The notes: generated by a model from the letters alone, not told the origin. DNA of 64,000 nt from Macrostomum hystrix (GCA_950097015.1 CATNEN010000024.1:2418001-2482000), one strand, 5' to 3'; shown: positions 39,913 through 64,000, counted from the stretch's first letter. A program made the numbers and translations.

Positions 39913-40099
39913 TGTGTTGTACTTTGATATGTGTTGTACTTTCATTATATAGAAACTAGTATTTGACCGTTGCAGCTAAATATCCCATAGACAATTCGTT
40001 CTACCTGTTTGTTTGCGAGGACCGCGTTAAGAGTGTTTGCGGCTCTAGCTTTCGTGGTAACCCCGGGCTTTGCTATCTACACAAATACATCAGACCACA
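39913..40099 (+). repeat. 5' LTR (187 bp)
   Basis: Base-for-base identical to the 3' LTR on manual comparison. Confidence 0.96.
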
Positions 40100-40122
40100 A
40101 GCTATCGCGGCAATACGCAACG

Positions 40123-40833
40123 ATGGCAAGCGCAGTCAAATTCAGCGACATAATCAAGCAGTACGACGGTGAAGAGGATTTTTCGCGCTGGGCACAGAAG
40201 CTCGAACTCGTTGCCAAGCTCCAAAAAGTGAATGACCTGGCTGCTTTCATCCCACTATTTCTATCGGGAGGTGCGTTCGCCGTGTACCAGGCACTAAACG
40301 AGGAAAGCAAGTCGGACTACAAAACTCTGAAAGCGGCTCTTACCTCAGCGTTCTGCCCAAACAAGTACAAACCATACGACGAGTTCGTGTCACGCAGGCT
40401 CGGCCCCGGGGAGTCCGTGGACGTTTTTCTCGTGGATCTCACGAGGCTTGCACGCCTAGTGGACGAGATCCCCGGGGAAGAATGGATCAAATGCGCATTC
40501 GTCCGCGGGCTTCCAGCAACCGTCAGTCAGCAGCTGATCGCTTCCTGCTCTCTAAAAGAGCTCGAACTCCATGAACTAGCGGAGAAAGCTAGAAACTTAA
40601 CGATCAGTCGCGAGTCCTGCTGTGTTGTCTCGAGCGCAGGAAATGCGCGAAGCGCTGGAAAGTTCGCCCCACGCAACAAAGTGATGTCGTGCTACTCGTG
40701 CGGCAAGGAGGGCCATGTGAGCAAAGAGTGCATGGAACGCAACCGAGCGAATCAAGGTTGTTTTGTTTGTGGAAAAGCGGGACATGTGGCTGCTCGATGC
40801 CCGCAGCGCGCCGATTTTCAAAAAAACGAGTGA
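40123..40833 (+). CDS. gag: Gag (236 aa) with two CCHC zinc knuckles
   Basis: First ATG after the LTR (MASAVKF...); CYSCGKEGHVSKEC and CFVCGKAGHVAARC. Confidence 0.9.
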   Translation: MASAVKFSDIIKQYDGEEDFSRWAQKLELVAKLQKVNDLAAFIPLFLSGGAFAVYQALNEESKSDYKTLKAALTSAFCPNKYKPYDEFVSRRLGPGESVDVFLVDLTRLARLVDEIPGEEWIKCAFVRGLPATVSQQLIASCSLKELELHELAEKARNLTISRESCCVVSSAGNARSAGKFAPRNKVMSCYSCGKEGHVSKECMERNRANQGCFVCGKAGHVAARCPQRADFQKNE

Positions 40834-43800: not shown

Positions 43801-44108
43801 CGCCAACTGTGTCTCTCCCTGAGGCCTTGGAGACCTTGGAGGCAAACCCCACCCTGCCAGTGGGAACAGAAGTGTTTGTTAAACCGCCGGCCGTCAGATG
43901 CACCGACGAGTGGCCTAGGGGACGCGTGACGGGCCAGGGACAAGGGTCTACGGTGGAGGTCGATGGCCTTCCCCGTCACGTAGCTGACGTCCGCCCGGCA
44001 CCAGACACGCAACCGCAGCCTCCTGGGGTGGAGCGAGCTGTCGAGCGGGATGCCGAACCACGACGGTCTAATAGGGTGAAGTCGGCGCCGGTCCGTTACG
44101 AACCTTGA
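40821..44108 (+). CDS. pol: Pol polyprotein (protease, RT, RNase H, integrase), likely reached by -1 frameshift
   Basis: LVDTGCS protease; IDLRKAYLQ / LGFGLNVAP / YIDDI RT; WCDAS...HINLAELEAV...TDS RNase H; H..HH...C..C zinc finger and CDVTHF / LDNSPTF / NGIVER integrase; open to the stop at 44108. Confidence 0.93.
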   Translation, partial: KKRVMEARNVCANGLPCAPAHLPSLSVHVNSLVVTALVDTGCSRSIVSSRVTGVKKRPVHERVTMMNGDSAECEWEADVTLSVRGHQLPVLRCIVMDILPGFDLLLGMDAISRLGGVSVKRDCRSVRFGIEEQSLALETAAVAKAFSKPKAESPVSCPAGEVESPVSCPAGEVESPVSCPAGEVESPVSCPAGEVESPVSCPAGEVESPVSCPAGEVESPVSCPAGEVESPVSCPAGEVESPVSCPAGEVESPVSCPAGEVESPVSCPAGEVESPVSCPAGEVESPVSCPARGARLAKNTLTEACLVLEEKDFSAKFIDGEWTVAWKWLDEAPLLSNTIAQYRVPPEAVGEYESEIKDWIQRGWLLPFEGDSDGVIPLMAVVQTNKAKVRPVLDYRELNQYVSSHTAESVVCGAKLRAWRRLGENASIIDLRKAYLQLRLDPSLWRYQVVRFKGRRYCLTRLGFGLNVAPKIMTAVVNKVLSMEDDVREATDSYIDDIIVNNSKIPNERVTGLLARFGLEAKPPESLIGGRVLGLRVYRREDGVICWKRDNVLSQLKGPATRRQLFSWCGQLVGHFPVAAWLRVACSYLKRVTSTIAWDAIVSESAMRIAQEISGMVQERDPVVGVWTVDETSSCRVWCDASSIAIGAVIEIGGVIVEDASWLRKQDDAAHINLAELEAVIKGLNLALAWGTRKVEVLTDSATVHGWLQSLIVGDKPVRVKGLGEALVRKRLSLIRDTASECELELLTSLVPSSANKADALTRVPQQWLRQRPFCAVALRPVDMDLRACHEKHHFGVDRTLYLAKLCFPEREVLREEVERIVANCIRCKSVDPAPMVWDHGRLEVDANWWRLACDVTHFKDDRYLSIVDCGPSRFSLWRKLTDERTASITGILVQVFRERGPPWQLLLDNSPTFRSAEVRAFCEAWGVQLLFRCAHRPSGNGIVERNHRTIKRMAARTGKDVLEMVFWYNMAPKDGTRKDSVPSRMVSTYDWKPPTVSLPEALETLEANPTLPVGTEVFVKPPAVRCTDEWPRGRVTGQGQGSTVEVDGLPRHVADVRPAPDTQPQPPGVERAVERDAEPRRSNRVKSAPVRYEP
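41274..41693 (+). repeat. Perfect in-frame 33-bp minisatellite (ESPVSCPAGEV x 12.7) between protease and RT
   Basis: Unit GAGTCACCTGTGAGCTGTCCGGCAGGAGAGGTC; 12 full units plus 24 bp. Confidence 0.96.
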
Positions 44109-46240: not shown

Positions 46241-48196
46241 ATGCAGTGTCTGGTTGGAACTGCAATACTCCTACTTAGCATTTTCTCCTTAATACCAAGA
46301 CCAAGTCTCTGTTCGGCAATTAATATCAGCTACTATCCTGAGCTAGAGGAACCTGTTGGCTGTGACTGGTTGCCATGGCGATGCTGGGCAAAGCATTCGA
46401 AGTTTAATCAGTTGACTCCGGAGTGCATTCTTTATAAAGTAAAGAACTGCTCAACAGAGCCGTTTGCCCGCCAGGAATTGAGTCCAGAGCAGCAGTTCTC
46501 TATGGGATATACCTGCGCCCACCCCATGACAGATCAGTATTGCTTGCCTAAACCGAGGTATGCCAACACTGGCAGCAAGGGAATGCAGACACAGTGGTGC
46601 CCGTGGCTGAACTGGCAGCCCTGGCATTATGCTTGCATCGATACTGTGATTGAGAGTAATCCTTGGCTCTCTCAAGTACTGTCTAATTATAAAGGTAGCT
46701 ACACCGATTTCTTGCATTCACTTTTAGTTACGAGTAATTGTTTAGTCATAGTCACATCATTTTTAGTTGTAATAATACTCGTATAAAGATAAAAACCAAC
46801 AAATAATAACAAGTGCTAGAGGGCTGTGGACAATGGCACATCATTTGGTGACACTAGGCCCGCAGCCAGCGAGGACGCAGTTCTGCTCACTCTGCTGACT
46901 CCTGAGCACACACGCACACTAGATACCGTACGCAGGCACACGCTCACACACTGGTGTACATCTGCCTTGGCTTTCTCATCATTAGCCAGTGTACACTTTC
47001 ACTGTGCCGATTGGCCCTCAAAGGCGTAAATTGCACGACAAGCCTATAAGCCTTCTCAAAATAAATGAGACATTTTTGTCAATACAGTCAGTCAGTCAGT
47101 CAGTCAGTCAGTCAGTCAGTCAGTCAGTCAGTCAGTCAGTCAGTCAGTCAGTCAGTCAGTCAGTCAGTCAGTCAGTCAGTTCTCTTTCCAAACCTCGCAG
47201 AGCGGCAGCGAAGTAACGCAGTGTGGCTGAAAATGCGCAGCAGATTCTGCGTCTGTCCAGGTCGGTACAATATCCCCTGCTCCGGATTTAGCCAGCAGGC
47301 GGCATTCGCGCCGCAGTTAACCGCTCTGGAAGCTGGGCGACTCCCGGCCAGCCGCCTGACTTCCTGGTGCCCCTGGTCCACCTGGTCCGCCAGCTGCGAC
47401 TGTGCCACCGATTCGTCATCCGGCTATCGGTATCGTAGCCGCGTCTGCCTAGTCCACAATCATAATACTCTCTGCCCTGGCCGGGACGCCGACAGCAAAA
47501 GCTGCCGTTGCGACAGGATAGCGCCGTCGACACCGAAAACTCGAGAACTGGATTCTGATTTCTTTTTCAGCAAGCCAGTCATTCTCATGGTGTCGATTCC
47601 TCTGGGCGTGCTGCTCATTCTCTGCTGCGTCTGTCGGGCCACGAGTCGTCAAGACCGAGAGTGAGTGGTGCCTATGAGTTTGTTGAAATCCAAAATGTAT
47701 CGATTCTTCGTAATGATAATAAGGCAGGTAATATATACCGATAGCATTTTGCCTCTCGCTCATATTAAGGTCCCTTATGTTGAATCCACGGCGAGGCCAC
47801 ATTCATTTTAGGCTTGTCGTGCAATTTACGCCCACTGAGGGGCCAACCTCCAAGGCTCAGTGAAAGTGTACACTGTCTGACGAACCTCTCCTTGCCCTCT
47901 TGCTGGCGGCGGGTCCAGTGTCATGAAATGTTGTGCCATTGCCCAGAGCCCTCCTGCAATTTTGTATTACTTTTATTAATTTTTTTATATTAACAATTTA
48001 TGACAGACATCTGCGGCTGCGGCGGCAGCAGCAGCAGCATCGGCTGGAGCCGCATGAGCTACTGCCATCAACTGGACTTCGACAATCCGACCGTCCAGTC
48101 CTTCTGCCACCAACTGCTACCGCTGCCGTCGAGGTTGACAACTCGCTGGATGCGCCACCTCCGTCCTACGAGGAGGCAATTAAGTTGGTGACTTGA
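46241..48196 (+). CDS. TSP1-like/TM/PPxY receptor paralog 1 (367 aa); exons 46241-46694, 47201-47660, 48007-48196
   Basis: Signal peptide; GCDWLPWRC...C.LY..KNCSTEP...QWCPWLNWQPWHYAC; WLKMRSRFC...WCPWSTWSASCDC...RYRSRVC; TM VILMVSIPLGVLLILCCVC; tail PPPSYEEAIK. GT-AG introns of phase 1 and 2; total 1104 nt in frame. Confidence 0.85.
46830..47046 (-). mobile_element. SINE family 2, 5'-truncated copy, in intron 1 of paralog 1
   Basis: Reverse complement aligns with 54470-54675 (GGCTTGTCGTGCAATTTACGCC...CAGTGAAAGTGTACACTG...GGCAGATGTACAC...GTGTGCTCAGGAGTC...CTAGTGTCACCAA). Confidence 0.75.
47085..47180. repeat. (CAGT)24 microsatellite ending 20 nt before the exon-2 acceptor
   Basis: Direct. 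Confidence 0.97.
47735..47880 (+). mobile_element. SINE family 2, 3'-truncated copy, in intron 2 of paralog 1
   Basis: Aligns with 54375-54535 (AAGGTCCC...ATCCACGGCGAGGCCACATTCATTTTAGGCTTGTCGTGCAATTTACGCCC...CAGTGAAAGTGTACACTG). Confidence 0.75.
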
Positions 48197-48574
48197 CCCG
48201 ATACGTACCAACCCAGATGATTGTAGTGTTTGGCAGCGGGTTCGAACCCATGACGCTCCTCCATTCGGCTTTCTAATACATTTTGCTTGCTTTTTTGTCT
48301 TTAAGCGCTCTGTCTGTACATATTGATTGATTGATTGTAAACCTTTTTTAACGCTTGACGCTATATTATACTTGTATTCTTTACACTGAAGTCAATGCTA
48401 AGTTATTTCCGCTTCCAAAGCGGATTTCTGGTCTATAATGTTGTTTTTCCAATTATGAAAAAACTCACTCACATGCCACAATACAACTCACTCAATTACC
48501 ACAAAAAAATCACCCCACCCCACATTAGAAGTCACCCTCGCGGGTATGTACGAGTTGTGACAGGGACAAGAAGA

Positions 48575-49320
48575 TGTGAGTGAGTTGTATTGTGGTATGT
48601 GAGTGAGTTGTATTGTGGTATGTGAGTGAGTTGTATTGTGGTATGTGAGTGAGTTGTATTGTGGTATGTGAGTGAGTTGTATTGTGGGATGTGAGTGAGT
48701 TGTATTGTGGTATGTGAGTGAGTTGTATTGTGGTATGTGAGTGAGTTGTATTGTGGTATGTGAGTGAGTTGTATTGTGGTATGTGAGTGAGTTGTATTGT
48801 GGTATGTGAGTGAGTTGTATTGTGGTATGTGAGTGAGTTGTATTGTGGGATGTGAGTGAGTTGTATTGTGGTATGTGAGTGAGTTGTATTGTGGTATGTG
48901 AGTGAGTTGTACTATGGTATGTGAGTGAGTTGTATTGTGGTATGTGAGTGAGTTGTATTGTGGTATGTGAGTGATTTGTATTGTGGTATGTGAGTGATTT
49001 GTATTGTGGGATGTGAGTGAGTTGTATTGTGGTATGTGAGTGAGTTGTATTGTGGTATGTGAGTGAGTTGTATTGTGGGATGTGAGTGAGTTGTATTGTG
49101 GTATGTGAGTGAGTTGTATTGTGGGATGTGAGTGAGTTGTATTGTGGTATGTGAGTGAGTTGTATTGTGGGATGTGAGTGAGTTGTATTGTGGTATGTGA
49201 GTGAGTTGTATTGTGGGATGTGAGTGAGTTGTATTGTGGTATGTGAGTGAGTTGTATTGTGGTATTTGAGTGATTTGTATTGTGGGATGTGAGTGAGTTG
49301 TATTGTGGGATGTGAGTTAA
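48575..49320. repeat. 23-bp minisatellite (GTGAGTGAGTTGTATTGTGGKAT), ~32 copies, ending ~30 nt before paralog 2
   Basis: Direct tandem periodicity. Confidence 0.95.
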
Positions 49321-49349
49321 GTGACTCCATCTCAAATGTCACCTTGCAG

Positions 49350-52300
49350 ATGGTATTGTCTGCCACAATCACAGCAGCATTGGGCTTAATCACTAGCTTA
49401 ATAAGCCTGTGTTCGGCCAATTTCACCATCTATCCATTGCTGGAGGAAGCCGGCTGTCCTTGGTCTGATTGGCAATGCAGGACAGAAAAAGCCGTGCCTT
49501 ATCCGAACTGCATTCTCTATCAAGAAAAGAACTGCTCAACGGAACCCTATCTACAGAAAGTTTACAGTGCAACTCAACAGACACTCATGGGTGTGCTATG
49601 CTCCTTCACTTTTACTCAAAAAGTTTGCCGTTCTAAGCCGAGCTACTCAACCAGTAGCAAGATCGGGCCGCAGTGGTGCCAGTGGCTGCCCTGGATGCAT
49701 TGGCGCTACGCCTGCGTGGATGCTGTGATGGAGGAATACCCGTGGCTAGCTGAGTTCTTCACAAATTTTACAAGTGAGCCCGTTATAATAGAGGACAGTT
49801 ATTTGATTGTTGTCAGCAGTAATAGCTAGTTAGACCCAAGGGGCCCGTACTACGAGTATAAAGCGTTCGTACGCTCCGTCGTGAGCTCTATCTTACGCAC
49901 GACAGTTAGTAACCGTCTCAGAGCGTTGTTAAGTGCGTTCGTTGAAACTTTCGTAGATACGTCTTAACTTACGCAGTGGCTACGATCAAGCTTAAGTATT
50001 GGTGCCTGAGAATTCACAACCGCCAGCGAAACTTTTTCCACTCATTATTACATTTGTTTTTAGATGCAGGATGTTGTTCACGAATTATTAATTCGTAAAG
50101 TAAATACTTAATGAACCAAAACGTAGAGTCAAATGCACATTTCCATGAAGAAACATTTGACTTTGCCACGATCAACCACTGCCATCGATCCTTTTCACCG
50201 ACAGTACGGTCGTATTTAACAATGTTAAGCAAGCAATAAAATATATCCGAAAACTGGGTTTCGGTGTCTTTTATCGAGGTCTTATATTATTATCGAGATG
50301 AGACAATGAAATGTTATGCACTGTTTATCTATCCATAAAATTAAGATGCTTATCGCTCGACCGCTTCTTCCTTTTCATCGCTAGTATTTCCTGCTCGATG
50401 CCTTGATGTTCTCTGTCGATCTGCAGCCTCTCCCTCTCAACGCACAATCGCTTGTTTTCAACATCCAGTCAAGCTTCATCCACACAAATTCGGTTTTTTC
50501 CAACGCTTCAATAGTCACAAGGTTGCTTTGCCTGGGCCGAAACTTGCTATTCCTCGCACGCGTGGCAGCAGACTCTTCCATGTCTTCATCATCTGCCGTC
50601 TCGTACTCAGGTGACTCACTTCTGCCTAGCTGCTTTTGCTTCATCAGGCTTATTGGCAGGAGGCGTGCAGACAGTATTAACACATACAAACATCGAGCTT
50701 GACGACGCAGCCTGGACCTTGGTTAGAGGCAGCTGCAGCGTGTCTACACCAGATGGTACGCCTTCGACGGCTTGTTTTCGAACAGACTGCGCCGCCTTCT
50801 CCTCGAAGCTCGACAACTGCAGAGCCTGCGATGGACCACCTCCAGTCTTATATTTTGTTTTTTTTGCGGTTGATGGCGACCTTGTGCTTCAGCTGGCTTT
50901 TGAAGTCGGACCAGTCGGATCTGCTCTCCAGATCGTCCTTGTCCGTCGACCGCATTGACGATATCGGCGATCTGCTGCCATCCGCGCTTTTTGCGTAGAT
51001 TAGCTTCAACTGTATTTGCGGAGCTTTCTAGATAGCTTTTGCGCATCGGTCACTGCCTCCTGAAGTGCTTCAAGCTCTGCGATTGACCAATTGGCCGCGC
51101 GTCTTTGTGCTGCGTTAGAATTCATCGCATAATATAAATATCTGCGAGTACGATCAGGACAGCAACTTCTCCTCTATCAGTCGCCGCTTTATACTCGTAT
51201 TGTCGCTAAATTCCAAAAAAATGGTTGAGGCTGTTTACAACCTTTGGCGGCGAGTTCAATGAAGCCAACCAACGTCGATTATCAGTCGGTCGAAGGTTGC
51301 CCCTTCGGTCGACAGATTAAGTTTAAATCTTTGCTTTGGTTCAACTGTAGTTGCGTAACAGCCTCAAGAGTTGTGGCCGATGTTTGCAAGCTGCTTCAGG
51401 ATATGGCACCTGTTTTTATTTCATTTCCAAGCAATCAACAGGCGGCAGCAGCTTCAGCATGTGCTTTCTTGAATGCCGGAGTGGCACAAGGTGCTCGGAG
51501 CCATCGACTGTACGCACATCCGCATCCGGCGCCCAATCGACGATGGTGAAATTTTTATCAACAGAAGGGGTTTCCACTCGATCAATGTTCAGGCAGTGCG
51601 CTGTGCCAGTCTCGCATTTAAGAACGTCGTCGCACGCTTGGCCCGGCAGTAAGCCCGGCAGTAGATGCAGGCTATCCTCTCCAACCATTTCTGATGACAC
51701 CGTTTAGAGACCCACAAACGAATTCGGAGCAAAATTTCAACCGGCGACTGAGGAGAACGCGCGTGACAATCGAAAGGGCGTTCGGCGTTTTGAAAGCGAG
51801 ATTTTGGTGCCTTGATCACAGCGGAGGAGCTCTGTAGTTAAATCCTAACAAAGTGTGCAGCATTATTGTTGCATGCTGCGTGCTACAGAATTTTGCTTTG
51901 ACGAGAGCAGTTCCACTCCCACCTGAGCCTCAGCCGCTGGTCATGGAAGTGACTGAAGAAAATGAAGCCGCACCAGCTTAAGACACTGCTGCTAGTCGAG
52001 CAGAAAGACAGTGAATCATGCAGCTGCTGCCACTGTGATTGGACAGGGATTTTTCTTTTACTTTTCTTACGACTAAATATGAGACCTTTACAATAGGTTA
52101 TCTGCTCTACGAGTAATTAGTAATCTATGTGATGAAGTATAACCTCTAAATATACAATGGCCGTGTCTTTTACATTGCTAAGGCGAGACTTACGGCAGCT
52201 CCGATCTATCTTAGATTTATGGCGGAACTTAAGGAGCCGGATTGACTTACGAAAGTTTCACCTAATGCTAAATTACGCGTCCGCGATGACTTAAAAAGCT

Positions 52301-53713
52301 TCTGAAATCTAAGAACGATCTCAAGATACGAGTGTACGATGGCTTCACTGAACATTTTACGACACGGCGCCAACGTAAGTTGGAACTTAGAGATACGCAA
52401 GCCTTATAGAACGGGCCCAAGGTCCACTAGAAGAAGAAGGACGGAACGCTTCGTTTTTTACGAAATGTATTAAAGGCAGATTTTTACGGAAAAATGCACT
52501 AGCGAGATTGGAACTTTTTACTTTTTTTACATTAAAATGTAGATAAATTTTAATTGGAAGCAGATCCAATGCTGTTCATGGTGTTTCTAGTGGCCTAATT
52601 TCACTTGTTATAGCCCTTGAAGGTCACGCAGTTGGTCTAGATAAAGGTAGGTGACCACCGAAGACGGAGAATATGCAGTCACATTCGGGTGAAATACTGA
52701 TAAATTTTATAGGGGTGTATTTTATATTGCTCCTATAGGAAAAATCAGATTTTCGGCCAAAAACATTGAATATCTCGACGGTCGAAAGAGCTGGCAACTT
52801 GATTCTTGTTTCAGAAGATGCGCAAAAAAGTTGGCCCGTGTTCTTGAGTTTCGTTTGCTTGCTTTACACTGTTCTGTGCAGCACAAAAAATTTTCATGGG
52901 AAGGAGAAATCCCCCTTGGTAGTTCTATTGTTAAGCCACTTGTCTAGAAAGTAAATTTAGAATCGATTATAAATTTCCAATTCTAACAAATCTCGCAGAG
53001 CGGCAGCAGAATGGCGCAATCTGGCTGAAAATGCGCAGCCGAACCTGCGCCTGTCCCGGCCAGTACAATGTCCCCTGCACCGGGTTCGGCCTGCAGGCGG
53101 CCTTATCGCCGGAGCTTGACGAGTTGGAAGCTCGGCAACTCTCGGCCAACCGTCTGTCGGCCTGGTGCCCCTGGTCCGCCTGGTCCAGCAACTGCGACTG
53201 CTCCTCCGAGTATTTGAAGTCGTCTTCTGCTGCGCCAGTCCGTGAACGCAGCCGCGTCTGCCTGTCCAGTACTGTGTCTACCACGCCCTGCCTCGGCTCC
53301 AGCAGCGACCGACAGTCGTGCCGCTGCGATAGGACTTCGCCTCCAAGTGGCATAAGAAACATTAGCTTCAGGTCTATCATTGTCAAAGTGATCGCTCTGG
53401 CTGTCGTGATTCTCATTGTCTGTGTAGTTTTGCGCAGCTTCAAGCAGCGCCGAAATCAGGAGTGAGTGTGTGCCATATTTTTGTATTGTCTTTATTCATA
53501 AGCTTTCTTTTATCATAGCTTTGCTTTATATTTTTATCCAACAGGCTACAGGAGCAGCAGCCTGAGCAGCAATTTGAGCAGCTATTGCCTGCCGTTTCAA
53601 TCCAACCAGCTAATCCAACCGCTCCCGTCAATGACGAAAGCTCGCTGACTTCGCCGCCGCAGCCGCCGCCTCCGTCCTACGAGGAGGCGATTAAACTGGC
53701 GGCCAGACAATGA
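49350..53713 (+). CDS. TSP1-like/TM/PPxY receptor paralog 2 (351 aa); exons 49350-49773, 52999-53461, 53545-53713
   Basis: Same motifs and intron phases as paralog 1 (GCPWSDWQC...KNCSTEP...QWCQWLPWMHWRYAC | WLKMRSRTC...WCPWSAWSSNCDC...RERSRVC; TM IIVKVIALAVVILIVCVVL; PPPPSYEEAIK); total 1056 nt in frame. Confidence 0.85.
50382..51125 (-). pseudogene. Harbinger Myb/SANT-like DNA-binding protein, frameshifted
   Basis: Across frames: RRAANWSIAELEAL...RKKRGWQQIADIVNAVD...EQI...WSDFKSQLK...KTGGGPS...FEEK...VEGVPSGVDT. Confidence 0.75.
51340..52015 (+). pseudogene. Harbinger (HARBI1-like) DDE nuclease fragments, deleted and frameshifted
   Basis: VLGAIDCTHIRIRRP...FINRRGFHSINVQAV and DAGYPLQPFLMTPF...FNRRL..TRVTIERAFGVLKARFWCLDHSGGAL*...IIVACCVLQN; the N-terminal half is missing. 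Confidence 0.85.
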
Positions 53714-53724
53714 AAATGGCGGCG

Positions 53725-53850
53725 TGTAATTCTGACTGGGAGGTCGCGAGTTCGAATCTCAGCCTAACGGATGCAATTTGTGTACTTAAAAGATTCAGTT
53801 CATGCAGCTATCAAATGGGTATCAACATTAGCTGGAGTAGAATTTGGGTT
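53725..53850 (+). mobile_element. Degenerate SINE family 1 copy immediately 3' of the paralog 2 stop
   Basis: GAGGTCGCGAGTTCGAATCTC (B box) followed by AATTTGTGT...CAGCTATCAAATGGGTATCAACATTAGCTGG, similar to 37700-38018 and 57475-57630. Confidence 0.55.
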
Positions 53851-54361
53851 AGTGTCAAGTTGTGTCCACGGACATAATAGATGTACAAAGCCTTTGGAGG
53901 CGTCATGTTTACAATACTATGTATATCAATGTATGAATAGATGTAAAAATGCTTCGCTAGGGTCGTTTCTATCTATTAATACTGATTAACGATTTCCGGT
54001 GCAATACGTGATTGGCACTCACTACCTCGCTTCTTGTGTGCTAATTTATCCCACAATGGCTGCTGGCCCAATATTTTGCATTACTACACCACTTTGTTCC
54101 CTCTCATTTAGCTATAGTTTATGATTGCTATTGCTGCTGTAATCCTCACTTAACTTAGTTTCTTATCCGAGACAATTTTCGGCACGACAATTTCGTGCGC
54201 TGCCCGGCCTAACCCTGATAATAATCTATAAACATTTTGTCGTTAGTGTCGAATCATTCGCGGAATACATTTTACCTTTTATGTAACCTTCAGTTGAATA
54301 TACACTGACTAATCTCTATTTACTTACATTTTTAACTTGTTATTGCAACAAAATTACATTA

Positions 54362-54675
54362 TTCAGCGGTTAACGCGTTTGTCTCTCGCACCAAGGTCCC
54401 TGAGCTCGATTCCGCGGCGAGGCCACACTCATTTTAGGCGCAGCCGCGGAGAGAAGGCTTGGGGGCTTGTCGTGCAATTTACGCCCTTGAAGACCAACCT
54501 CCCAAGGTACAGTGAAAGTGTACACTGCCTGACGATGAGAAAGTCTGGGCAGATGTACACACCTGTGCGATAGTGTGCCTGCGTATAGTGTGCGTGTGTG
54601 CTCAGGAGTCTGCGGGATGGGCAGAATTGCCTGGCTGGGGATCTAGTGTCACCAATTGCAAATAATGCCCATTTT
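54362..54675 (+). mobile_element. tRNA-derived SINE family 2, near full-length copy
   Basis: A-box-like AGCGGTTAACGC and B-box-like GAGCTCGATTCC; the body is shared with the copies at 46830-47046 and 47735-47880. Confidence 0.72.
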
Positions 54676-54924
54676 TATGTGCAGCGTTATAATATTATGT
54701 CAGAGATTTTAAGCCGGCATCTGCTTCTTGTACTTATTATACGCATCAACAATTTTTTAAATAAAAATCTACAAGAGTCATCAGGAGTAATAACTATACC
54801 CTAATATAAAAAATTCGATATATAATATCGTGTCATCTTATTAATACTTTGGCTTGGGCGATGTATTACATACCGTAGCTCAAATAGAAGATTGTATTTA
54901 CACCATCTGATTCTCTATTTCCAG

Positions 54925-57900
54925 ATGAATCTGCTGTCACAGGTCCTTCGGCTCTGCCTACTATTGAGTCCTGTCTGCTCAGCTAACGATGTGACCATTT
55001 TTCCCATACTGAGTGAGTCCACAGGCTGCCAGTGGTCCGCATGGCGCTGCCGACAAGACACCAAGCTGCAGCCAGCCTGCATTACTTACAGAGAGAAGAA
55101 CTGCTCGACTGAGCCGTACGAGATAGACCAATTAGATGCAGTTCGTGAGTACATTGCCGCAGTGTCGTGCAGCTCAGCGACTCCCGCTAAGCAGATAAGC
55201 AGATCCCGCGACTGCTTATCAGAGCCCAGATACACCATGGATGCCAGCTTGGATCCGCAGTGGTGCCCTTGGCAGGACTGGCAGCCGTGGGCTTACGCCT
55301 GCGTTGCTACCGTGGCTGAGCAGCACTCTTGGCTAGCTGAGTCTTTGTCCAACTATAGCAGTGAGTTTTTCTTTGTGAAACCAATTATCAATTATTGCTT
55401 ATGCATACCTAAGCGCTGCGGCTGAACTGTTAGCAGTCTCAATTGTCTGTCCTTGTATATATGAGGCGTCACTGCATGCTTGAAATTCAATGAGTTTGGT
55501 GCCATTGGAAAGCGGAAAGTTTCATCTTTAAATTGACTGCTGAAATATGACCAAATTCGAACTATTCAACAAGTTACAACTAGAAACATAGAACAAGGTC
55601 CGCCATAGAGTTACAATGAAATCCACAAGACGCAACAGGTCAGCAGGAGTTCCGCAATTAGCATGCATCATCATCATCTGGAAGGGAAGTTTTTTTCAAC
55701 TTAGTTACCACCAGAAATCACAAACTTTTGCCAGCGACTGATCAAGCCATCAATCGCATCTGCGTAGACCTGTCCCGTAATCCCGTGAACGAGGATTCGG
55801 CGAACTTCCTGCTCCAGGTGATCACGGTTGGTGTGGACATGGCCTCTCAGATGGCGCTTCAGTTGTGGGAACAGGGCGAAGTCCGCAGGTGCCAGATGTA
55901 GTGAGTATGGAGGATGAGGAAGAACCTCGAACTTTAGCCTTTTAATCGCCTCCATTGTCTTTTGGGCAATATGCGGCTGGCCGTTGTCATGGTGCAGGAT
56001 GAAAGGCCTGACTTCTGAGCGCCGCTTGTTCTGGGTGTCCGCCCTCAGGCTGGCAAGAAGAGATGAATAACGGTCTACATTGATCGTCGATTTTGGTTCA
56101 AGGAAGTCAATGGTGATTGGGCCACTGCAGTCAAAGAACACTGACAGCATGGTCTTCTGAAAGTGTGTCTCACGCCTAGCCTTGACTGGCGGATAGGAAC
56201 CTCTGACTGCCCACACTTTTGACTCTTGCTTTGTCGGTGGGTCAAAATGTGGAACCCACGTCTCGTCACCAGTGACAATCAATTGGCGGAATAGATTCCA
56301 ACCACCACGCTGACTGACCAGATCCAGGTTGCCTTGGTAAGTCTGCTGGCGCTGCAGTCTTAGATCAGGCGTATGGAGCTTTGGGACCTTCACGAAGTCC
56401 ATGCTGGTCAGGCAGAGATGAATTGTTGATGTCGGGGCGTCAAGTCTATCCACCATCTCACGAATTGTCAGCCTGCTGTCTTCTTCTAGGAGGTCCAGAA
56501 TCCGGTCAGCCAAGGCTTCTGAACCTGGTGCCAATGGTCTTCCTGACCTGTGCAAGTCAGCCACATTTGTCCTCCCTGTCTCAAAATTTTCGATCCAGCG
56601 GTACACCGTCATGTGACTTATCGCTTCAGCTCCATGAATGCTGCGCAGATGACGGTGGATCTCCGACCCACTCTTTCCGATGCTCCACAAAGTGAATATG
56701 GCATGTCGCTGCCCTTCCTTGGAGTGCACATACATGATTTCCGTTTGTGCAGAAACTGCTCAGTCTTGACAGAAGCACTCAATTAAGTTTCTATATAGGC
56801 TCGTAGGTATTGTAATGTGGTGTCTGCATGCAAAGTGTCAGAGTTTGGATGGATTCGCCAGAGGTTTATGCAGAGAAATGCTTGTTGTCCTCGTCACCAG
56901 TGTCCTCGACAAGTATCGACAAGCTGAATATCTCGACGATGCTGACGTCGGACGGCTTCGAAAGCTAGTTCATCGTAAAGAGCGGAAAATCTCGATCAGT
57001 TTCATGAAAATGAGTCATTCGGTTTGTGAGCTATCGTGAAGGAGGCAGTGGGTATTTAAAATGCCACTCTTATGGCTATATTTCTATATATGGCTATATA
57101 GATGTCATACGCATGTCATTGGTCTTTCCCCAAGGGGAAAATACCGTACTCTTTCTACTGTCAAACGCCCGTAAAAGGGCCTCGACCTATCGGAATTGCT
57201 TACTGAGACAAAAATGTCTATGGCACAATTGCAGTAATGCGCATTTACGTAGGATTATCTTATACTTTCCACACGTGGGTAATATTTTATATGATCTATT
57301 CTCGGACTTGCTCAGTATTATAAGGATGCTATCTTTAGAACTCCTTGGGTGAAGCCATGCATGGAATTTTTCTAACTAGCATCTCTAGTTTCTAGCTAGA
57401 GAAATCTATGAAGTTGAAAAAATGCTCTTTTCCACTGAGTCCTAAGTTCTCGTTAAAGTGATCATGTTCTGATCAAGCCAGTGGTTAGAGCATCCGACTC
57501 ACGACTTCAAGGTCGGTGGTTCGATTCTCGACTCCGCTGGAACAATTTGTGTCCTTTAGCAAGACGCATTGCTTCATTTCACACAGCTGATAAATGGCTA
57601 CCAGCATAAGCTAGAGTCATCGAGGGTCGAATCACTTCAGTGGTGAAATCATTCATTATCATAATTATCACAGTAAATATTTCTGTAATATTGTGGCATT
57701 TCTACTACAAGTAGCTATTATAGTATTTTATGCAACACTTTTGGAAAAGTACGCTACTTTACCACTATAATTCAAAACTGCGTCTGGCATTGATTACTCA
57801 GAAAATCACGGCGACGCCATGTGGCTGCAGCTGCGAAGTCGAGACTGTCGTTGTCCCAACGGCCGATTAGAGATCGAGTGCTTCGGGCCCGGCTTTCAGG

Positions 57901-59192
57901 CCGCGTACGCGCCCCGAATCAACGAGTCCGAGGCGCTGCGATTGCCAACAAGCCGTCAGTCGGACTGGTGTCCGTGGACCGCCTGGTCCGGTGAGTGCTA
58001 CTGCCTGCCAAATTTGTCAAAACCAATGTTTCGCCAGCGCAGCCGCGTCTGCCGTTTCGGCACGTCTTCCAAAGCGCCCTGCCGCGGCGGCGGCGACTTT
58101 GACAGCGTCCAGTGCAACTGTAATGGGCCTTCTCGAAGCCGGCAGACTGACACTAAAACCATCGTTCTGGCCATCGCTGTGCCCGCTGGCGCGCTGATTA
58201 TTCTCTGTTCCGTGTTTTACTTTGGCCGAGCTAAGCGGCAGTGAGTAATTCTTTGAGAATAGCAGTGGGATAATTTGAAAGTAGAGAATAGCAGTGGGAT
58301 AATTTGAAAGTGGAGAATAGCATTGGGATAATTTGAAAGTGGGGAAATAGCAGTGGGATAATTTGAAAGTGGGGAAATAGCAGTGGGATAATTTGAAAGT
58401 GGAGAATAGCAGTGGGAGAATGTGAAAGTGGAGAATAGCAGTGGGATAATTTGAAAGTGGAGAATAGCAGTGGGATAATTTGAAAGTAGAGAATAGCAGT
58501 GGGATAATTTGAAAGTGGAGAAATAGCAGTGGGATAATTTGAAAGTGGAGAAATAGCAGTGGGATAATTTGAAAGTGGAGAATAGCAGTGGGATAATTTG
58601 AAAGTGGAGAAATAGCAGTGGGATAATTTGAAAGTGGAGAATAGCAGTGGGATAATTTGAAAGTGGAGAATAGCAGTGGGATAATTTGAAAGTGGAGAAT
58701 AGCAGTGGGATAATTTGAAAGTGGAGAAATAGCAGTGGGATAATTTGAAAGTAGAGAATAGCAGTGGGATAATTTGAAAGTGGAGAATAGCAGTGGGATA
58801 ATTTGAAAGTGGAGAATAGCAGTGGGATAATTTGAAAGTGGAGAATAGCAGTGGGATAATTTGAAAGTGGAGAATAGCAGTGGGGTTTGGGAATAGGTGG
58901 GCATTATTTAGAAGTATCAATAAAATGGTTGATATACCCTGTATATTTTAACTTGAGTTAAAGACTGGCTGATAAGACTTTTAAGTATAATTACATGATT
59001 TTATTACATAAAATGGTTTTATATTATTATAAGATCATGTAAAACTCATTTATTAGGAACCAGCAGCAGCAGCAACAGCAGCAACAACTCCTGCAAGTTG
59101 CAGTGCAGCAGCCGGTTAGTCCGGGCCCCGGTGACGGGCCAGTTAGTCAGCCGCCGCCATCCTATGAGGAGGTCTCAAAACAGACGGTCTGA
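54925..59192 (+). CDS. TSP1-like/TM/PPxY receptor paralog 3 (336 aa); exons 54925-55360, 57802-58240, 59057-59192
   Basis: Same motifs and phases (GCQWSAWRC...KNCSTEP...QWCPWQDWQPWAYAC | WLQLRSRDC...WCPWTAWSGECYC...RQRSRVC; TM IVLAIAVPAGALIILCSVFYF; polyQ; PPPSYEE); total 1011 nt in frame. Confidence 0.85.
55690..56805 (-). mobile_element. Mariner element (D,D34D transposase, 344-aa ORF 55701-56735), 3' end truncated, in intron 1 of paralog 3
   Basis: HTH region with VYRW and RSGRP; IVTGDETWV; LHHDNGQPH-34-D in YS..LAPAD. 5' TIR-like TACGAGCCTATATAGAAAC ends at 56805. A nonsense codon replaces Y in GN*VEK; no 3' TIR found. Confidence 0.88.
57475..57630 (+). mobile_element. SINE family 1 copy (tRNA head + CORE-like)
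   Basis: AGTGGTTAGAGC (A box), GGTTCGATTCTC (B box), then GGAACAATTTGTGTCCTTTAGCAAGAC...CAGCTGATAAATGGCTACCAGCA, aligning with the reverse complement of 37880-38018. Confidence 0.72.
58250..58885. repeat. 29/30-bp minisatellite (GTGGGATAATTTGAAAGTGGAGAATAGCA), ~21 copies, in intron 2 of paralog 3
   Basis: Direct tandem periodicity. Confidence 0.94.
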
Positions 59193-59239
59193 GTGCTGCC
59201 TGTGACTTAAGCTTGTTTTTGTATCAATGACTCAACTAA

Positions 59240-60447
59240 TGATGTGCCAGTTTTGATGAATGATGTGCCAGTTTTGATTAACGATGTGCCAGTTTTGATG
59301 AACGATGTGCCAGTTTTGATGACTGATGTGCCAGTTTTGATGAACGATGTGCCAGTTTTGATGGATTATGTGCCAGTTTTGATGAATGATGTGCCAGTTT
59401 TGATTAACGATGTGCCAGTTTTGATGAACGATGTGCCAGTTTTGATGACTGATGTGCCAGTTTTGATGAATGATGTGCCAGTTTTGATGAATTATGTGCC
59501 AGTTTTGATGAACGATGTGCCAGTTTTGATGAATTATGTGCCAGTTTTGATGAATTATGTGCCAGTTTTGATGAACGATGTGCCAGTTTTGATGAATTAT
59601 GTGCCAGTTTTGATGAACGATGTGCCAGTTTTGATGACTGATGTGCCAGTTTTGATGAATGATGTGCCAGTTTTGATGAATTATGTGCCAGTTTTGTTGA
59701 ACGATGTGCCAGTTTTGATGAATTATGTGCCAGTTTTGATGAATTATGTGCCAGTTTTGATGAATTATGTGCCAGTTTTGATGACTGATGTGCCAGTTTT
59801 GATGAATTATGTGCCAGTTTTGATGAACGATGTGCCAGTTTTGATGACTGATGTGCCAGTTTTGATGAATGATGTGCCAGTTTTGATGAATTATGTGCCA
59901 GTTTTGATGAACGATGTGCCAGTTTTGATGAATTATGTGCCAGTTTTGATGAACGATGTGCCAGTTTTGATGAACGATGTGCCAGTTTTGATGAATGATG
60001 TGCCAGTTTTGATGAACGATGTGCCAGTTTTGATGAACGATGTGCCAGTTTTGATGAACGATGTGCCAGTTTTGATGAATGATGTGCCAGTTTTGATGAA
60101 TTATGTGCCAGTTTTGATGAACGATGTGCCAGTTTTGATGACTGATGTGCCAGTTTTGATGAATGATGTGCCAGTTTTGATGAATTATGTGCCAGTTTTG
60201 TTGAACGATGTGCCAGTTTTGATGAATTATGTGCCAGTTTTGATGAATGATGTGCCAGTTTTGATGAACGATGTGCCAGTTTTGATGAACGATGTGCCAG
60301 TTTTGATGAATGATGTGCCAGTTTTGATGAACGATGTGCCAGTTTTGATGAACGATGTGCCAGTTTTGATGAACGATGTGCCAGTTTTGATGAATGATGT
60401 GCCAGTTTTGATGAACGATGTGCCAGTTTTGATGAACGATGTGCCAG
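59240..60447. repeat. 21-bp minisatellite (GATGTGCCAGTTTTGATGAAY), ~57 copies, 3' of paralog 3
   Basis: Direct tandem periodicity. Confidence 0.96.
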
Positions 60448-61124
60448 AAGCAAGGTTACCCGTGAAACGTTTTAAGTGCACACGTTGTTATTAAGGCCGC
60501 TTTTTTGTTGAAAACTGACTCAAAATTGTTGAGTCAGTGAGGATTTTGATGAAAGTTTGTGACTTTTTTAGTGGTCGACACTAGCGAGCATTTTTTCTCA
60601 TCCTGTTGTGTTTTTCGATTCAATAGAATGTTGGCCATTTTTTCAACTAGCTCGTACTACGCTCGTATATCGTTGGCTGATTCAAAATTACTGAAATTTT
60701 TTTGTCTCGTTCAACTTTTAGCAACTTCTCGTCCGTTCTACAGTTATACTCAGGGTCATTGTGGAACGATTTTATCGATTTTTTACCGATTTTTTTGTCG
60801 AATCTCTGAGAACCAGTGAGATAGTGCTTTTTCTACCAATACAAATTATCTAAGTCACTTTAGCAATATGCATGCAAGTTACTTTTCTGGTGAAGGTCTC
60901 ATGCTTGTCCCTCTTTATAGTTGAAATACCACGCTATTTCAAATTCCCATTGCCTACTTCACGATCACTCCCAAACCGGATGACTGATCGTGGGCGATAA
61001 AAAAATAACAGTGCACATAGGTATTTAAAATACCCTCCTCGTCTTCCTACTGTTTATTCTCGTAGTGCTTTATTCCTACGTAATGTAATTAAATAACTAA
61101 GAGAAAATATTTACAAACGGCTGC

Positions 61125-61600
61125 GTCCGCCTGTTCACCCTGTGCAGAGCAGTGGGGTCCGCCTGTTCACCCTGTGCAGAGCAGTGGGGTCCGCCTGTTC
61201 ACTCTGTGCAGTGCAGTGGGGTCCGCCTGTTCACTCTGTGCAGTGCAGTGGGGTCCGCCTGTTCACCCTGTGCAGTGCAGTGGGGTCCGCCTGTTCACTC
61301 TGTGCAGTGCAGTGGGGTCCGCCTGTTCACTCTGTGCAGTGCAGTGGGGTCCGCCTGTTCACCCTGTGCAGTGCAGTGGGGTCCGCCTGTTCACCCTGTG
61401 CAGTGCAGTGGGGTCCGCCTGTTCACCCTGTGCAGTGCAGTGGGGTCCGGCTGTTCACCCTGTGCAGTGCAGTGGGGTCCGCCTGTTCACCCTGTGCAGT
61501 GCAGTGGGGTCCGGCTGTTCACCCTGTGCAGTGCAGTGGGGTCCGCCTGTTCACCCTGTGCAGTGCAGTGGGGTCCGGCTGTTCACTCTGTGCAGTGCGG
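61125..61600. repeat. 32-bp minisatellite (GGGGTCCGCCTGTTCACYCTGTGCAGTGCAGT), ~15 copies
   Basis: Direct tandem periodicity. Confidence 0.94.
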
Positions 61601-62039
61601 TGGCTGTGTCCGCCATAGCTACTTTGTTGTTGAGAAAGGCACAAACATCAATAGTAATAACTACTGAAAGTAGTTAAAGGCATTGTTTTTTCTAAATAGT
61701 TGCCAGACTAAACCTCTTACCAAATTTCCCTTATCGATTTATATTTTGCACCTTGCAGCTTTAATTGCAGTTTTTTTAATAATATTATTGCGTTGGCAAG
61801 TGAAAATTTTGATACTCGTATTATGATTATGAATGCATTTCATAATTGGACTGATTTTTTATTTTACCTTATGGCTACTCGCAATATAAATTTACTGCGT
61901 TCCTTGACCCAAACACATTCTTATTCAAAATTTAATAATGATTAGTTAACTAGGCTGGATGAAGTCATTTTTTATTGTCATTTATAGTGCTATTCCAAGA
62001 CAAAATAAATTCCCATGTAGTTCGTTTTTATTTAAAAAA

Positions 62040-62225
62040 GGTTGGTTGCCCCATCGAACTAGCTGGTTGCCCCATCAAACTGGTTGGTTGCCCCATCGAA
62101 CTAGTTGGTTGCCCCATCAAACTAGTTGGTTGCCCCATCGAACTAGTTGGTTGCCCCATCAAACTGGTTGGTTGCCCCATCAAACTAGTTGGTTGCTGTA
62201 TCGATCGAACTAGTTGGTTGCCCAA
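62040..62225. repeat. 21-bp minisatellite (GGTTGCCCCATCRAACTAGTT), ~8 copies
   Basis: Direct tandem periodicity. Confidence 0.9.
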
Positions 62226-62359
62226 TCATACACTTGAACTTCGTCTGTTCTTTCTATGAAGTAATTTGCCTGTTCGAATTCCATAATAGTTCGTGGGTGA
62301 TGTTACGAGCTATTTAATTTTTTCTGCGCAACTTTTACTTGAATTCTGTTTCATTACAG

Positions 62360-62786
62360 ATGCCACACCTGACATTATTGCTCAGCCTTCTGTCATCAAT
62401 CCTAGGCTGTTGTCTTTCCGCAGTCAATATAACTGTCTATCCTACCGCTGAGCAGCTGGTCAAGCCCGGCTGTGATTGGTCCGACTGGCAGTGCTCTGAG
62501 AAGCCCGGCAATCCGCCTAGCTGCACACTGTTCAAGGAATGGAACTGCTCAGGCCAGCCCTACCAACGGCTCGAGTACTATCACTATAGTCAGTTTTACA
62601 AGGGCATCAGCTGCAATACCAGGGAGTCACTATCATCTTGTCTGACAGTGCCAGACTACTCAACTGGCTATTCTGAGCAGCCCCGTTGGTGCTCTTGGCA
62701 GGAGTGGCAACAGTGGAGATACGTCTGCTTAGACACAGCGATACGTGACCACTCCTGGCTGCAAACTGCATTGTACAAGTATGGAA
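62360..62786 (+). CDS. TSP1-like receptor paralog 4, first coding exon (gene continues beyond the window)
   Basis: Signal peptide, GCDWSDWQC...C.LFKEWNCSGQP...RWCSWQEWQQWRYVC...SWL...L..Y; phase-1 donor GTGAGT at 62787, at the same position as in paralogs 1-3. Confidence 0.82.
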
Positions 62787-62964: not shown

Positions 62965-64000
62965 TTTATCACAGACTAGTTCTGTTTATCACTGGCTAGT
63001 TCTGTTTATCACAGGCCAGTTCTGTTTATCACAGACTAGTTCTGTTTATCACTGGCTAGTTCCATTTAGCACAGGCTAGTTCCATTTAGCACAGGCTAGT
63101 TCTGCTTATCACTGGCTAGTTCTGTTTATCACAGGCCAGTTCTGTTTATCACAGACTAGTTCTGTTTATCACTGGCTAGTTCTGTTTATCACAGACTAGT
63201 TCTGTTTATCACAGACTAGTTCTGTTTATCACAGACTAGTTCTGTTTATCACTGGCTAGTTCTCTTTATCACTGGCTAGTTCTGTTTATCACTGGCTAGT
63301 TCTGTTTATCACTGGCTAGTTCTGTTTATCACAGACTAGTTCTGTTTATCACAGACTAGTTCTGTTTATCACAGGCCAGTTCTGTTTATCACAGGCCAGT
63401 TCTGTTTATCACAGGCCAGTTCTGTTTATCACAGGCTAGTTCCATTTATCACAGGCTAGTTCTGTTTATCACAGACTAGTTCTGTTTATCACAGGCCAGT
63501 TCTGTTTATCACTAGCTAGTTCTGTTTATCACAGGCTAGTTCCATTTATCACAGGCTAGTTATGTTTATCACTGGCTAGTTCTGTTTATCACTGGCTAGT
63601 TCTGTTTATCACAGGCTAGTTCTGTTTATCACTGGCTAGTTCCATTTATCACAGGCCAGTTCTGTTTATCACAGGCCAGTTCTGTTTATCACAGGCTAGT
63701 TCTGCTTATCACAGGCTAGTTCCATTTATCACAGGCTAGTTCCTTTTATCACAGGCCAGTTCTGTTTATCACAGGCTAGTTCTGTTTATCACCGGCTAGT
63801 TCTGTTTATCACAGACTAGTTCTGTTTATCACAGGCTAGTTCTGTTTATCACTGGCTAGTTATTTTTATCACTGGCTAGTTCTGTTTATCACTGGCTAGT
63901 TCTGTTTATCACTGGCTAGTTCTGTTTATCACAGGCTAGTTCTGTTTATCACAGGCTAGTTCTGTTTATCACAGGCTAGTTCCATTTATCACAGGCCAGT
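62965..64000. repeat. 20-bp minisatellite (CTAGTTCTGTTTATCACWGR), >50 copies, runs off the window
   Basis: Direct tandem periodicity in intron 1 of paralog 4. Confidence 0.95.

Follow-up and report, generated by a model that had tools for sequence, protein, structure and literature searches.

A Macrostomum-restricted family of small single-pass membrane proteins with a divergent thrombospondin type-1-like module and a PY-motif tail

What is encoded by a head-to-tail series of diverged genes for Cys/Trp-rich, single-pass membrane proteins found in one window of the Macrostomum hystrix genome (the whole 64,000-nucleotide stretch analyzed; contig 24:2,418,001-2,482,000)? A first-pass annotation of this sequence had proposed an array of recognition receptors with a variable surface. 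The window holds three complete three-exon genes (P1 through P3) and exon 1 of a fourth (P4), all on the + strand between positions 46241 and 62786. We find that they belong to an undescribed, small, and fairly old family of small single-pass membrane proteins, and on present evidence the locus is not a hypervariable recognition locus. Judged from sequence, the products are type-I membrane glycoproteins of ∼340 to 390 residues, restricted to Macrostomum, with a predicted layout of cleavable signal peptide, N-terminal Cys-rich domain, strands bearing a tryptophan ladder (W-ladder) and RSR motifs, a module resembling the thrombospondin type-1 repeat (TSR), a transmembrane helix, and a Gln/Pro-rich tail.

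Gene models were based on open reading frame (ORF) listing, alignment, and splice-site inspection; motifs were located by regular expressions on the six-frame translation. Inspection of the splice sites bears out the common orientation and shared exon structure that the first-pass annotation had described: all copies use canonical GT-AG sites, the first intron (donor G|GT) falling in phase 1 and the second (donor GTGAGT) in phase 2. Exon 1 encodes a hydrophobic signal peptide with CSA at its end and then a Cys/Trp-rich stretch. Exon 2 encodes, in order, WLxxRSRxCxCP, WCPWxxWSxxCxC...RxRSRVC...CxG...CxC, a transmembrane helix, and basic residues. Exon 3 is Gln/Pro-rich and closes with PPPSYEE[AV] plus a few residues. 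The order of signal peptide, Cys/Trp-rich ectodomain, single transmembrane segment, and short Q/P-rich tail agrees with the architecture claimed earlier.

Every motif of the conserved skeleton reported earlier was recovered in its place. GCxWxxWxC, NCS[TG][EQ]P, and WCxWxxWxxWxYxC are present in four of four exon-1 ORFs (46241, 49350, 54925, and 62360), and [LM]RSRxC, WCPWxxWSxxCxC, and RxRSRVC in all three exon-2 ORFs of the window (47201, 52999, and 57802); the PPxY tails are likewise real, PPPSYEE closing exon 3 in the three complete genes (stop codons at 48196, 53713, and 59192). Between the motifs the residues have diverged, the paralogs sharing 36 to 49% protein identity. Nearly every invariant position is occupied by C, W, P, G, or R, and likeness among the paralogs at the DNA level is confined to exons. 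The annotated subfamily-A gene of the congener M. lignano has intron positions and phases identical to those of the M. hystrix models, and its protein is continuous across the predicted M. hystrix junctions; the gene models are therefore supported by an annotated relative. In what follows, the window genes were searched exon by exon, and full-length analyses used the M. lignano proteins in the databases.

The ATG codons of P2, P3, and P4 stand right after good 3′ splice acceptors (ttgcag, ttccag, and ttacag; 49340-49352, 54915-54927, and 62350-62362), and the M. lignano subfamily-A model also starts just past an acceptor, a few codons upstream of the first Met. Acceptor-adjacent start codons and short same-strand spacers fit spliced-leader trans-splicing or an upstream noncoding exon, and the array is possibly transcribed in an operon-like manner.

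Family members were counted by six-frame profile searches of the 220,453,370-base assembly (42 contigs) and by inspection of the DNA downstream of the window. The tandem array is real but larger than the four genes first reported: extension of the contig to the right, as the first-pass annotation had suggested, yielded exons 2 and 3 of P4 together with P5, P6, and P7 within 15 kb, so that the array comprises six genes of subfamily A (P1 through P6) and one of subfamily B (P7). An eighth gene, P8 (subfamily C), is unlinked, on contig 38; it has the exon structure of the other members, and its tail has lost the Tyr (SPPAD). The six-frame searches found no further family locus in the genome, which gives a total of eight genes. 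Weak matches on contigs 25 and 2, one an SRCR/TSR gene and the other a semaphorin-5-like gene, proved to lie in TSR genes of the ordinary kind and were rejected as members. The semaphorin-5-like gene (contig 2:7,557,170-7,558,010; a PSI domain, then TSRs) is the sole nonfamily locus matched by the exon-2 profile.

P4, P5, and P6 are near-identical, with 0 to 0.01 synonymous substitutions per synonymous site (dS) in exon 1; P4 has a Cys that P5 and P6 lack. P6 (75016-76440 in coordinates extended past the window) matches P4 and P5 in exon 1 and in the TSR-like module. Its juxtamembrane/transmembrane segment is different, and its exon-3 remnant carries stop codons and lacks the PY motif; P6 may be a decoy without a tail, or a gene on its way to becoming a pseudogene. 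The decayed exon 3 and altered transmembrane segment of P6, the extra Cys of P4, and the restriction of the family to one lineage would all suit secreted or shed Cys-rich structural or glandular proteins with an incidental transmembrane segment and tail, or duplicates that are partly in decay and have kept no common function. We judge this very improbable: the seven genes other than P6 have open frames and intact splice sites, the ratio of nonsynonymous to synonymous divergence (ω) is below 1, and the transmembrane helix, the basic stop-transfer residues, and the PY motif are kept between species whose proteins are only ∼35 to 45% identical elsewhere.

An exhaustive hmmsearch with the exon-1 profile against 1.84 billion representative proteins returned three matches (E = 1.7e-28, 1.1e-10, and 1.6e-5), all of them M. 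lignano protein clusters annotated as hypothetical or uncharacterized, one per subfamily. When complete M. lignano proteins served as queries in word-index searches, individually or combined in a profile, no match outside M. lignano emerged, and no Pfam family scored above threshold on any of the exons or of the complete M. lignano proteins. The M. lignano genes include Mlig018523, Mlig034364, and Mlig019245; a search for the M. lignano gene identifiers in the main texts of papers and in two supplements (PMC5816591 and PMC5730564) gave no match. The family is restricted to Macrostomum, unnamed, and without a Pfam model, in agreement with the first-pass annotation, which did not recognize the architecture as that of a named family. 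One UniProt entry called “EGF-like domain-containing protein” is a chimeric model that fuses the M. lignano subfamily-A gene with the B gene next to it; its name is no evidence of an EGF domain.

Per-exon trees place one M. lignano protein with each subfamily, A (P1 through P6), B (P7), and C (P8). The M. lignano genome has a single A gene with a B gene 0.9 kb downstream in the same orientation, and this order of A next to B is common to both species. Since M. lignano carries the single A gene followed by B in the same orientation, we take the A-B pair to be ancestral; the six A copies of M. hystrix reflect either an expansion in its lineage or a loss in M. lignano. The array would then have arisen from an ancestral A-B pair by old duplications of A and, after these, a very recent triplication.

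The ectodomain contains the strand signatures of a TSR. The strand A ladder is present in every copy, as WCPWxxWS in exon 2 and as WCxWxxWxxW in exon 1; strand B is found as RxRSR[VL]C 12 to 17 residues past the exon-2 ladder, and a second RSRxCxCP stands at the start of exon 2. When the exon-2 profile was searched against the Protein Data Bank (PDB), the four best matches were TSRs (BAI1 TSR3, E = 0.005; thrombospondin-1, E = 0.014; F-spondin; and MIC2), the E values of the top matches running from 0.005 to 1. Comparison of the membrane-proximal module by hhalign with 12 canonical TSRs of the same genome gave a probability of 92% (E = 6.6e-7, 45 columns), and comparison with the semaphorin-5-like TSR pair gave 87%. 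Based on the PDB profile matches, the alignment to the TSRs of the same genome, and the alignment to the semaphorin-5-like pair, the membrane-proximal module is, at the level of its sequence profile, a divergent TSR in which W-ladder, R-strand, and later cysteines are retained. The top rows of a Foldseek search are all TSR proteins, but weak (E = 0.06 to 0.5), and an ESM-Atlas feature search with exon 2 gave a weak TSP1/THSD7-type lead (0.88).

The divergence is considerable. The CSxTCG turn and the canonical six-Cys spacing are absent; the turn is replaced by CxC (e.g., SCDC), and the module has seven Cys. A genome-wide scan with TSP_1 found 58 matches, all canonical repeats and none of them in this cluster. 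The earlier description of the proteins as TSP1-like thus stands for the membrane-proximal module at the profile level, and does not extend to the Pfam TSP_1 model, which matches no copy. The exon-1 W-ladder and the RSRxCxCP of exon 2 may together form a first TSR-like unit split by intron 1; exon 1 alone showed no TSR similarity in the profile comparison.

AlphaFold2 (AF2) predicts that the N-terminal ∼65 residues, with the first six Cys, form a small β/α domain, with a predicted local distance difference test score (pLDDT) of 80 to 92 both in the full-length M. lignano model and in the model of P1 exon 1. No match to exon 1 was found in the PDB profile search or in the ESM-Atlas feature search, and fold searches of the PDB and the ESM Atlas with the exon-1 model returned nothing significant (VIA-align Z ≤3.2, the best being a COMM domain; Foldseek E ≥0.77; Atlas template modeling score ≤0.33). 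The modeled domain is a candidate new small fold, although a missing match is no proof of one. In the fold search with the model of the whole protein, the long transmembrane/poly-Q helix dominated the outcome.

A single cytoplasmic feature is conserved across subfamilies A and B and both species: the extended PY motif [L/P]PSYEEA[I/V]K, which ends the tails 4 to 9 residues from the C terminus. It is carried by P1 through P5 and P7, as well as by M. lignano subfamilies A and B; the tail ends read PPSYEEAIKL (P1 and P2), PPSYEEVSK (P3), LPSYEEAVKL (P4 and P5), and PPSYEEAIKQ (P7). The M. lignano A protein also gives a subthreshold match to WBP-1 (PF11669), covering the transmembrane segment and tail only (E = 2.9e-4; 21.9 bits versus a cut-off of 28.1 bits). 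The extended motif GLPSYDEAL (LPSYDEAL) is essential in Commissureless (Comm), is common to the PRRG proteins, and is bound by Nedd4 WW domains, and Shisa, WBP1, VOPP1, and CYYR1 have been placed in one functional class of Cys-rich, single-pass, PY-bearing adaptors (PMC5578492). In the M. hystrix genome, at least four loci (contig 39:1.58 Mb, 25:3.06 Mb, 1:4.13 Mb, and 8:4.06 Mb) encode WW repeats with a HECT domain after them and are candidate Nedd4-type ligases; candidate partners of the required kind therefore exist.

We propose, with about as much confidence as doubt, that the family consists of lineage-specific PY-motif transmembrane adaptors or endocytic receptors that recruit Nedd4-family ligases. 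The ectodomain would bind an extracellular or luminal partner, as TSRs habitually bind matrix, glycan, or receptor ligands, while the extended PY motif of the tail would dock onto WW domains in HECT ligases of the Nedd4 family. Both the protein and any partner held by it would then be ubiquitinated and sent to endosomes or lysosomes. Such a mode of action would be like that of the Commissureless/PRRG4, Shisa/WBP1L, or Ndfip adaptors, or like that of an endocytic receptor that down-regulates itself.

Several observations weigh against this proposal. The PY motif is not universal, being without its Tyr in subfamily C (PPAD) and lost with the decayed exon 3 of P6. PPxY motifs are also bound by WW proteins that are not ligases, such as YAP/Yorkie and MAGI, which makes the downstream partner ambiguous. 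On the extracellular side, Pfam TSP_1 (PF00090) gave no match at E ≤1 on any exon or any full-length M. lignano protein, and AF2 pLDDT is 45 to 60 over both W/R modules. Finally, subfamilies A and B evolve faster than C, which would fit a recognition role too.

The choice of WW partner separates the adaptor proposal from a matrix/adhesion or guidance receptor that would signal via WW-domain scaffolds (YAP/Yorkie or MAGI-type) and not via ubiquitin ligases, its ectodomain binding matrix or glycosaminoglycans and its PPxY tail sequestering or activating a WW effector, as in dystroglycan-type receptors. The TSR-like ectodomain and a PPxY near the C terminus are compatible with such a receptor, the same PY motifs of PRRG4 bind MAGI proteins as well (PMC5578492), and many of the WW-domain loci in the genome have no HECT domain next to them. 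However, it is in adaptors that bind Nedd4 that an acidic-hydrophobic extension of the form SYEEA[I/V] has been described (PMC5578492), and the tail is too short for other signaling modules; we consider a scaffold-coupled receptor improbable.

To describe the evolutionary regime, dS and ω were estimated by the Nei-Gojobori method per exon with counts summed over exons, saturation making the estimates weak. P1 and P2 have a dS of 0.95, and all other diverged pairs have dS >1.3 or are saturated; ω among diverged pairs is 0.2 to 0.55 and never exceeds 1. For P4-P5, dS is 0.035 and ω is 0.13, and the three young copies (P4 through P6) differ mostly at synonymous sites. Identity to the M. lignano ortholog is 32 to 46% for subfamily A, 37% for B, and 52 to 66% for C. 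The genes of the array are old duplicates, evolving faster than the unlinked paralog but with no detectable signal of diversifying selection; the data leave room for some relaxation or adaptive change in A and B.

These values bear on the first-pass proposal of diversifying recognition receptors, in which an invariant scaffold would present a fast-changing surface for immunity, self/nonself discrimination, or sperm-egg or partner recognition in a hypodermically inseminating hermaphrodite, and this pressure would be driving an expansion of the array. The genes do form a tandem cluster whose invariant skeleton is only C/W/R/P/G; subfamilies A and B are less similar to their M. lignano orthologs than C is (32 to 46% versus 52 to 66%) and have longer branches; there are six A copies in M. 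hystrix versus one at the syntenic M. lignano locus; and a triplication is recent. Yet the whole genome holds eight family genes, diverged pairs combine ω of 0.2 to 0.55 with dS ∼1 or saturated, differences between young copies are mainly synonymous (ω = 0.13), and three subfamilies and the A-B order have been kept across a deep split within the genus. Because the duplicates are old and the copy number is only eight, a diversifying recognition system is not supported, and we regard it as unlikely; with three orthologous subfamilies, a conserved gene order, and ω never above 1, we set aside the variable-surface array of the first-pass annotation. Recognition could also be coupled to the adaptor function proposed here. 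Macrostomum-specific surface recognition (of sperm, partner tissue, or self/nonself, in a hypodermically inseminating, self-fertilizing hermaphrodite) would use the orphan N-terminal fold as its fast-evolving surface and link ligand engagement to Nedd4-driven internalization, and the expansion of A from one to six copies in the M. hystrix lineage would be adaptive; this, too, we hold to be quite unlikely.

The coordinates of the array are collected in Table 1. Its introns and spacers are full of minisatellites, a mariner element, and other repeats. Long, highly homogeneous minisatellites (periods of 20 to 33 bp, up to 58 copies) lie in every spacer and in some introns, and length differences between array repeat units are mostly due to them; a (CAGT)24 microsatellite lies in P1 intron 1, immediately upstream of exon 2. 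A short interspersed element of ∼100 to 200 bp is repeated, in either orientation, within introns and spacers (46826-47057, 47790-47880, and 54400-54585), inverted pairs being 78 to 84% complementary. Strings resembling the tRNA TpsiC arm closely follow the stop codons of P1 (∼48230) and P2 (∼53745); ARAGORN called no tRNA genes in these tRNA-like sequences. Immediately upstream of the array is a long terminal repeat (LTR) retrotransposon with gag and pol (1139-residue ORF; window 40009-44108), its pol containing an in-frame perfect 33-bp minisatellite of 12.8 copies (41274-41697). An MFS/SLC17-like transporter with a long open exon of GC-rich coding sequence (window 16368-17507) is unrelated to the array.

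Table 1. Positions of array genes and embedded repeats, counted from the first nucleotide of the window; extended coordinates continue this count past the window's end
Feature	Position	Strand	Description
P1 (subfamily A) exon 1	46241..46694	+	Predicted signal peptide, N-terminal Cys-rich β domain, WCxWxxWxxWxYxC strand; donor G|GT, phase 1
P1 exon 2	47201..47660	+	WLKMRSRxCxCP segment, TSR-like module (WCPWSTWS...RYRSRVC...CxG...CxC), predicted transmembrane helix, basic stop-transfer; donor GTGAGT, phase 2
P1 exon 3	48007..48196	+	Cytoplasmic Q/P-rich tail, C terminus PPPSYEEAIKLVT-stop
P2 exon 1	49350..49773	+	ttgcag acceptor immediately before ATG
P2 exon 2	52999..53461	+	TSR-like module and transmembrane segment; intron 1 is 3.2 kb
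P2 exon 3	53545..53713	+	Tail, C terminus PPPPSYEEAIKLAARQ-stop
P3 exon 1	54925..55360	+	ttccag acceptor immediately before ATG
Mariner/Mos1-type transposase ORF	55701..56735	-	Intact, 344 residues; within P3 intron 1; Pfam Transposase_1 and HTH_48; not a family member
P3 exon 2	57802..58240	+	TSR-like module and transmembrane segment
P3 exon 3	59057..59192	+	Poly-Q tail, C terminus PPPSYEEVSKQTV-stop; minisatellite on either side
P4 exon 1	62360..62786	+	Remaining exons 2 and 3 outside window
P4 exons 2, 3	∼64827-65280, ∼66000-66200 (extended)		Beyond window
P5, P6 exon 1	66728, 72963 (extended)		Near-identical to P4
P7 (subfamily B)	76441-77997 (extended)		Very divergent last gene; intron phases as in others; tail end LLPPSYEEAIKQ
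Array minisatellites	48574-49317, 58255-58884, 59238-60447, 61125-61603, 62041-62228, 62965-64000

Should the proposed mechanism be true, the family would be an independently assembled PY-motif adaptor that brings together a TSR-like ectodomain, an orphan disulphide-rich domain, and a Comm/PRRG4-type Nedd4-docking motif, and would provide a data point on the convergent origin of sorting adaptors. For Macrostomum as a model system, it adds a compact lineage-specific gene family amenable to RNA interference and transgenesis.

Three known systems invite comparison. Type-I receptors with TSRs (THSD1, THSD7A, UNC5, semaphorin-5, and the apicomplexan TRAP/MIC2) share with this family the WxxWxxW and RxRxR strands, conserved Cys, and an adjoining single transmembrane segment, and the similarity to the repeats of BAI1, TSP-1, F-spondin, and MIC2 is at the profile level. 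Unlike them, the present module falls below the Pfam TSP_1 threshold and has CxC in place of the CSxTCG turn, which carries the O-fucosylation site; the family is also much smaller, has an orphan N-terminal domain, and ends in a PY tail where those receptors have death, ZU5, or acidic-Trp tails.

Members of the Shisa-like superfamily (Shisa, WBP1/WBP1L, VOPP1, TMEM92, and CYYR1) are closer in layout, with a signal peptide, an N-terminal Cys-rich ectodomain, one transmembrane segment, and a Pro-rich PY tail, and have been reported as transmembrane adaptors for NEDD4-family ligases (PMC6991692, PMC10531659). They are defined by six Cys in the pattern C*C*CC*CC after the signal peptide (PMC5578492, citing Pei and Grishin 2012). 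The present proteins do not show that pattern: their ectodomain contains no CC doublet and differs in Cys spacing, it is larger (∼250 residues with 18 Cys and W-ladders), and the WBP-1 score lies below the cut-off.

Commissureless and PRRG4 resemble the family in being single-pass proteins with a short cytoplasmic tail and an extended PY motif (LPSYDEAL in Comm, [L/P]PSYEEA[I/V]K here), and the Comm/PRRG motif binds Nedd4 WW domains and controls the trafficking of a surface receptor (PMC5578492). Where those proteins have a propeptide or Gla-like segment, the present ones have the orphan Cys-rich domain and TSR-like modules; no Gla or other Pfam match was found in the array exons or the M. lignano proteins, and the ectodomain is Cys/Trp-rich. 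Sequence homology is limited to the motif; binding of Nedd4-family WW domains and rerouting of a partner receptor are predicted for the present proteins. The best-supported view is that the family would work like adaptors of the Comm, PRRG, and Shisa types while being a member of none of those families.

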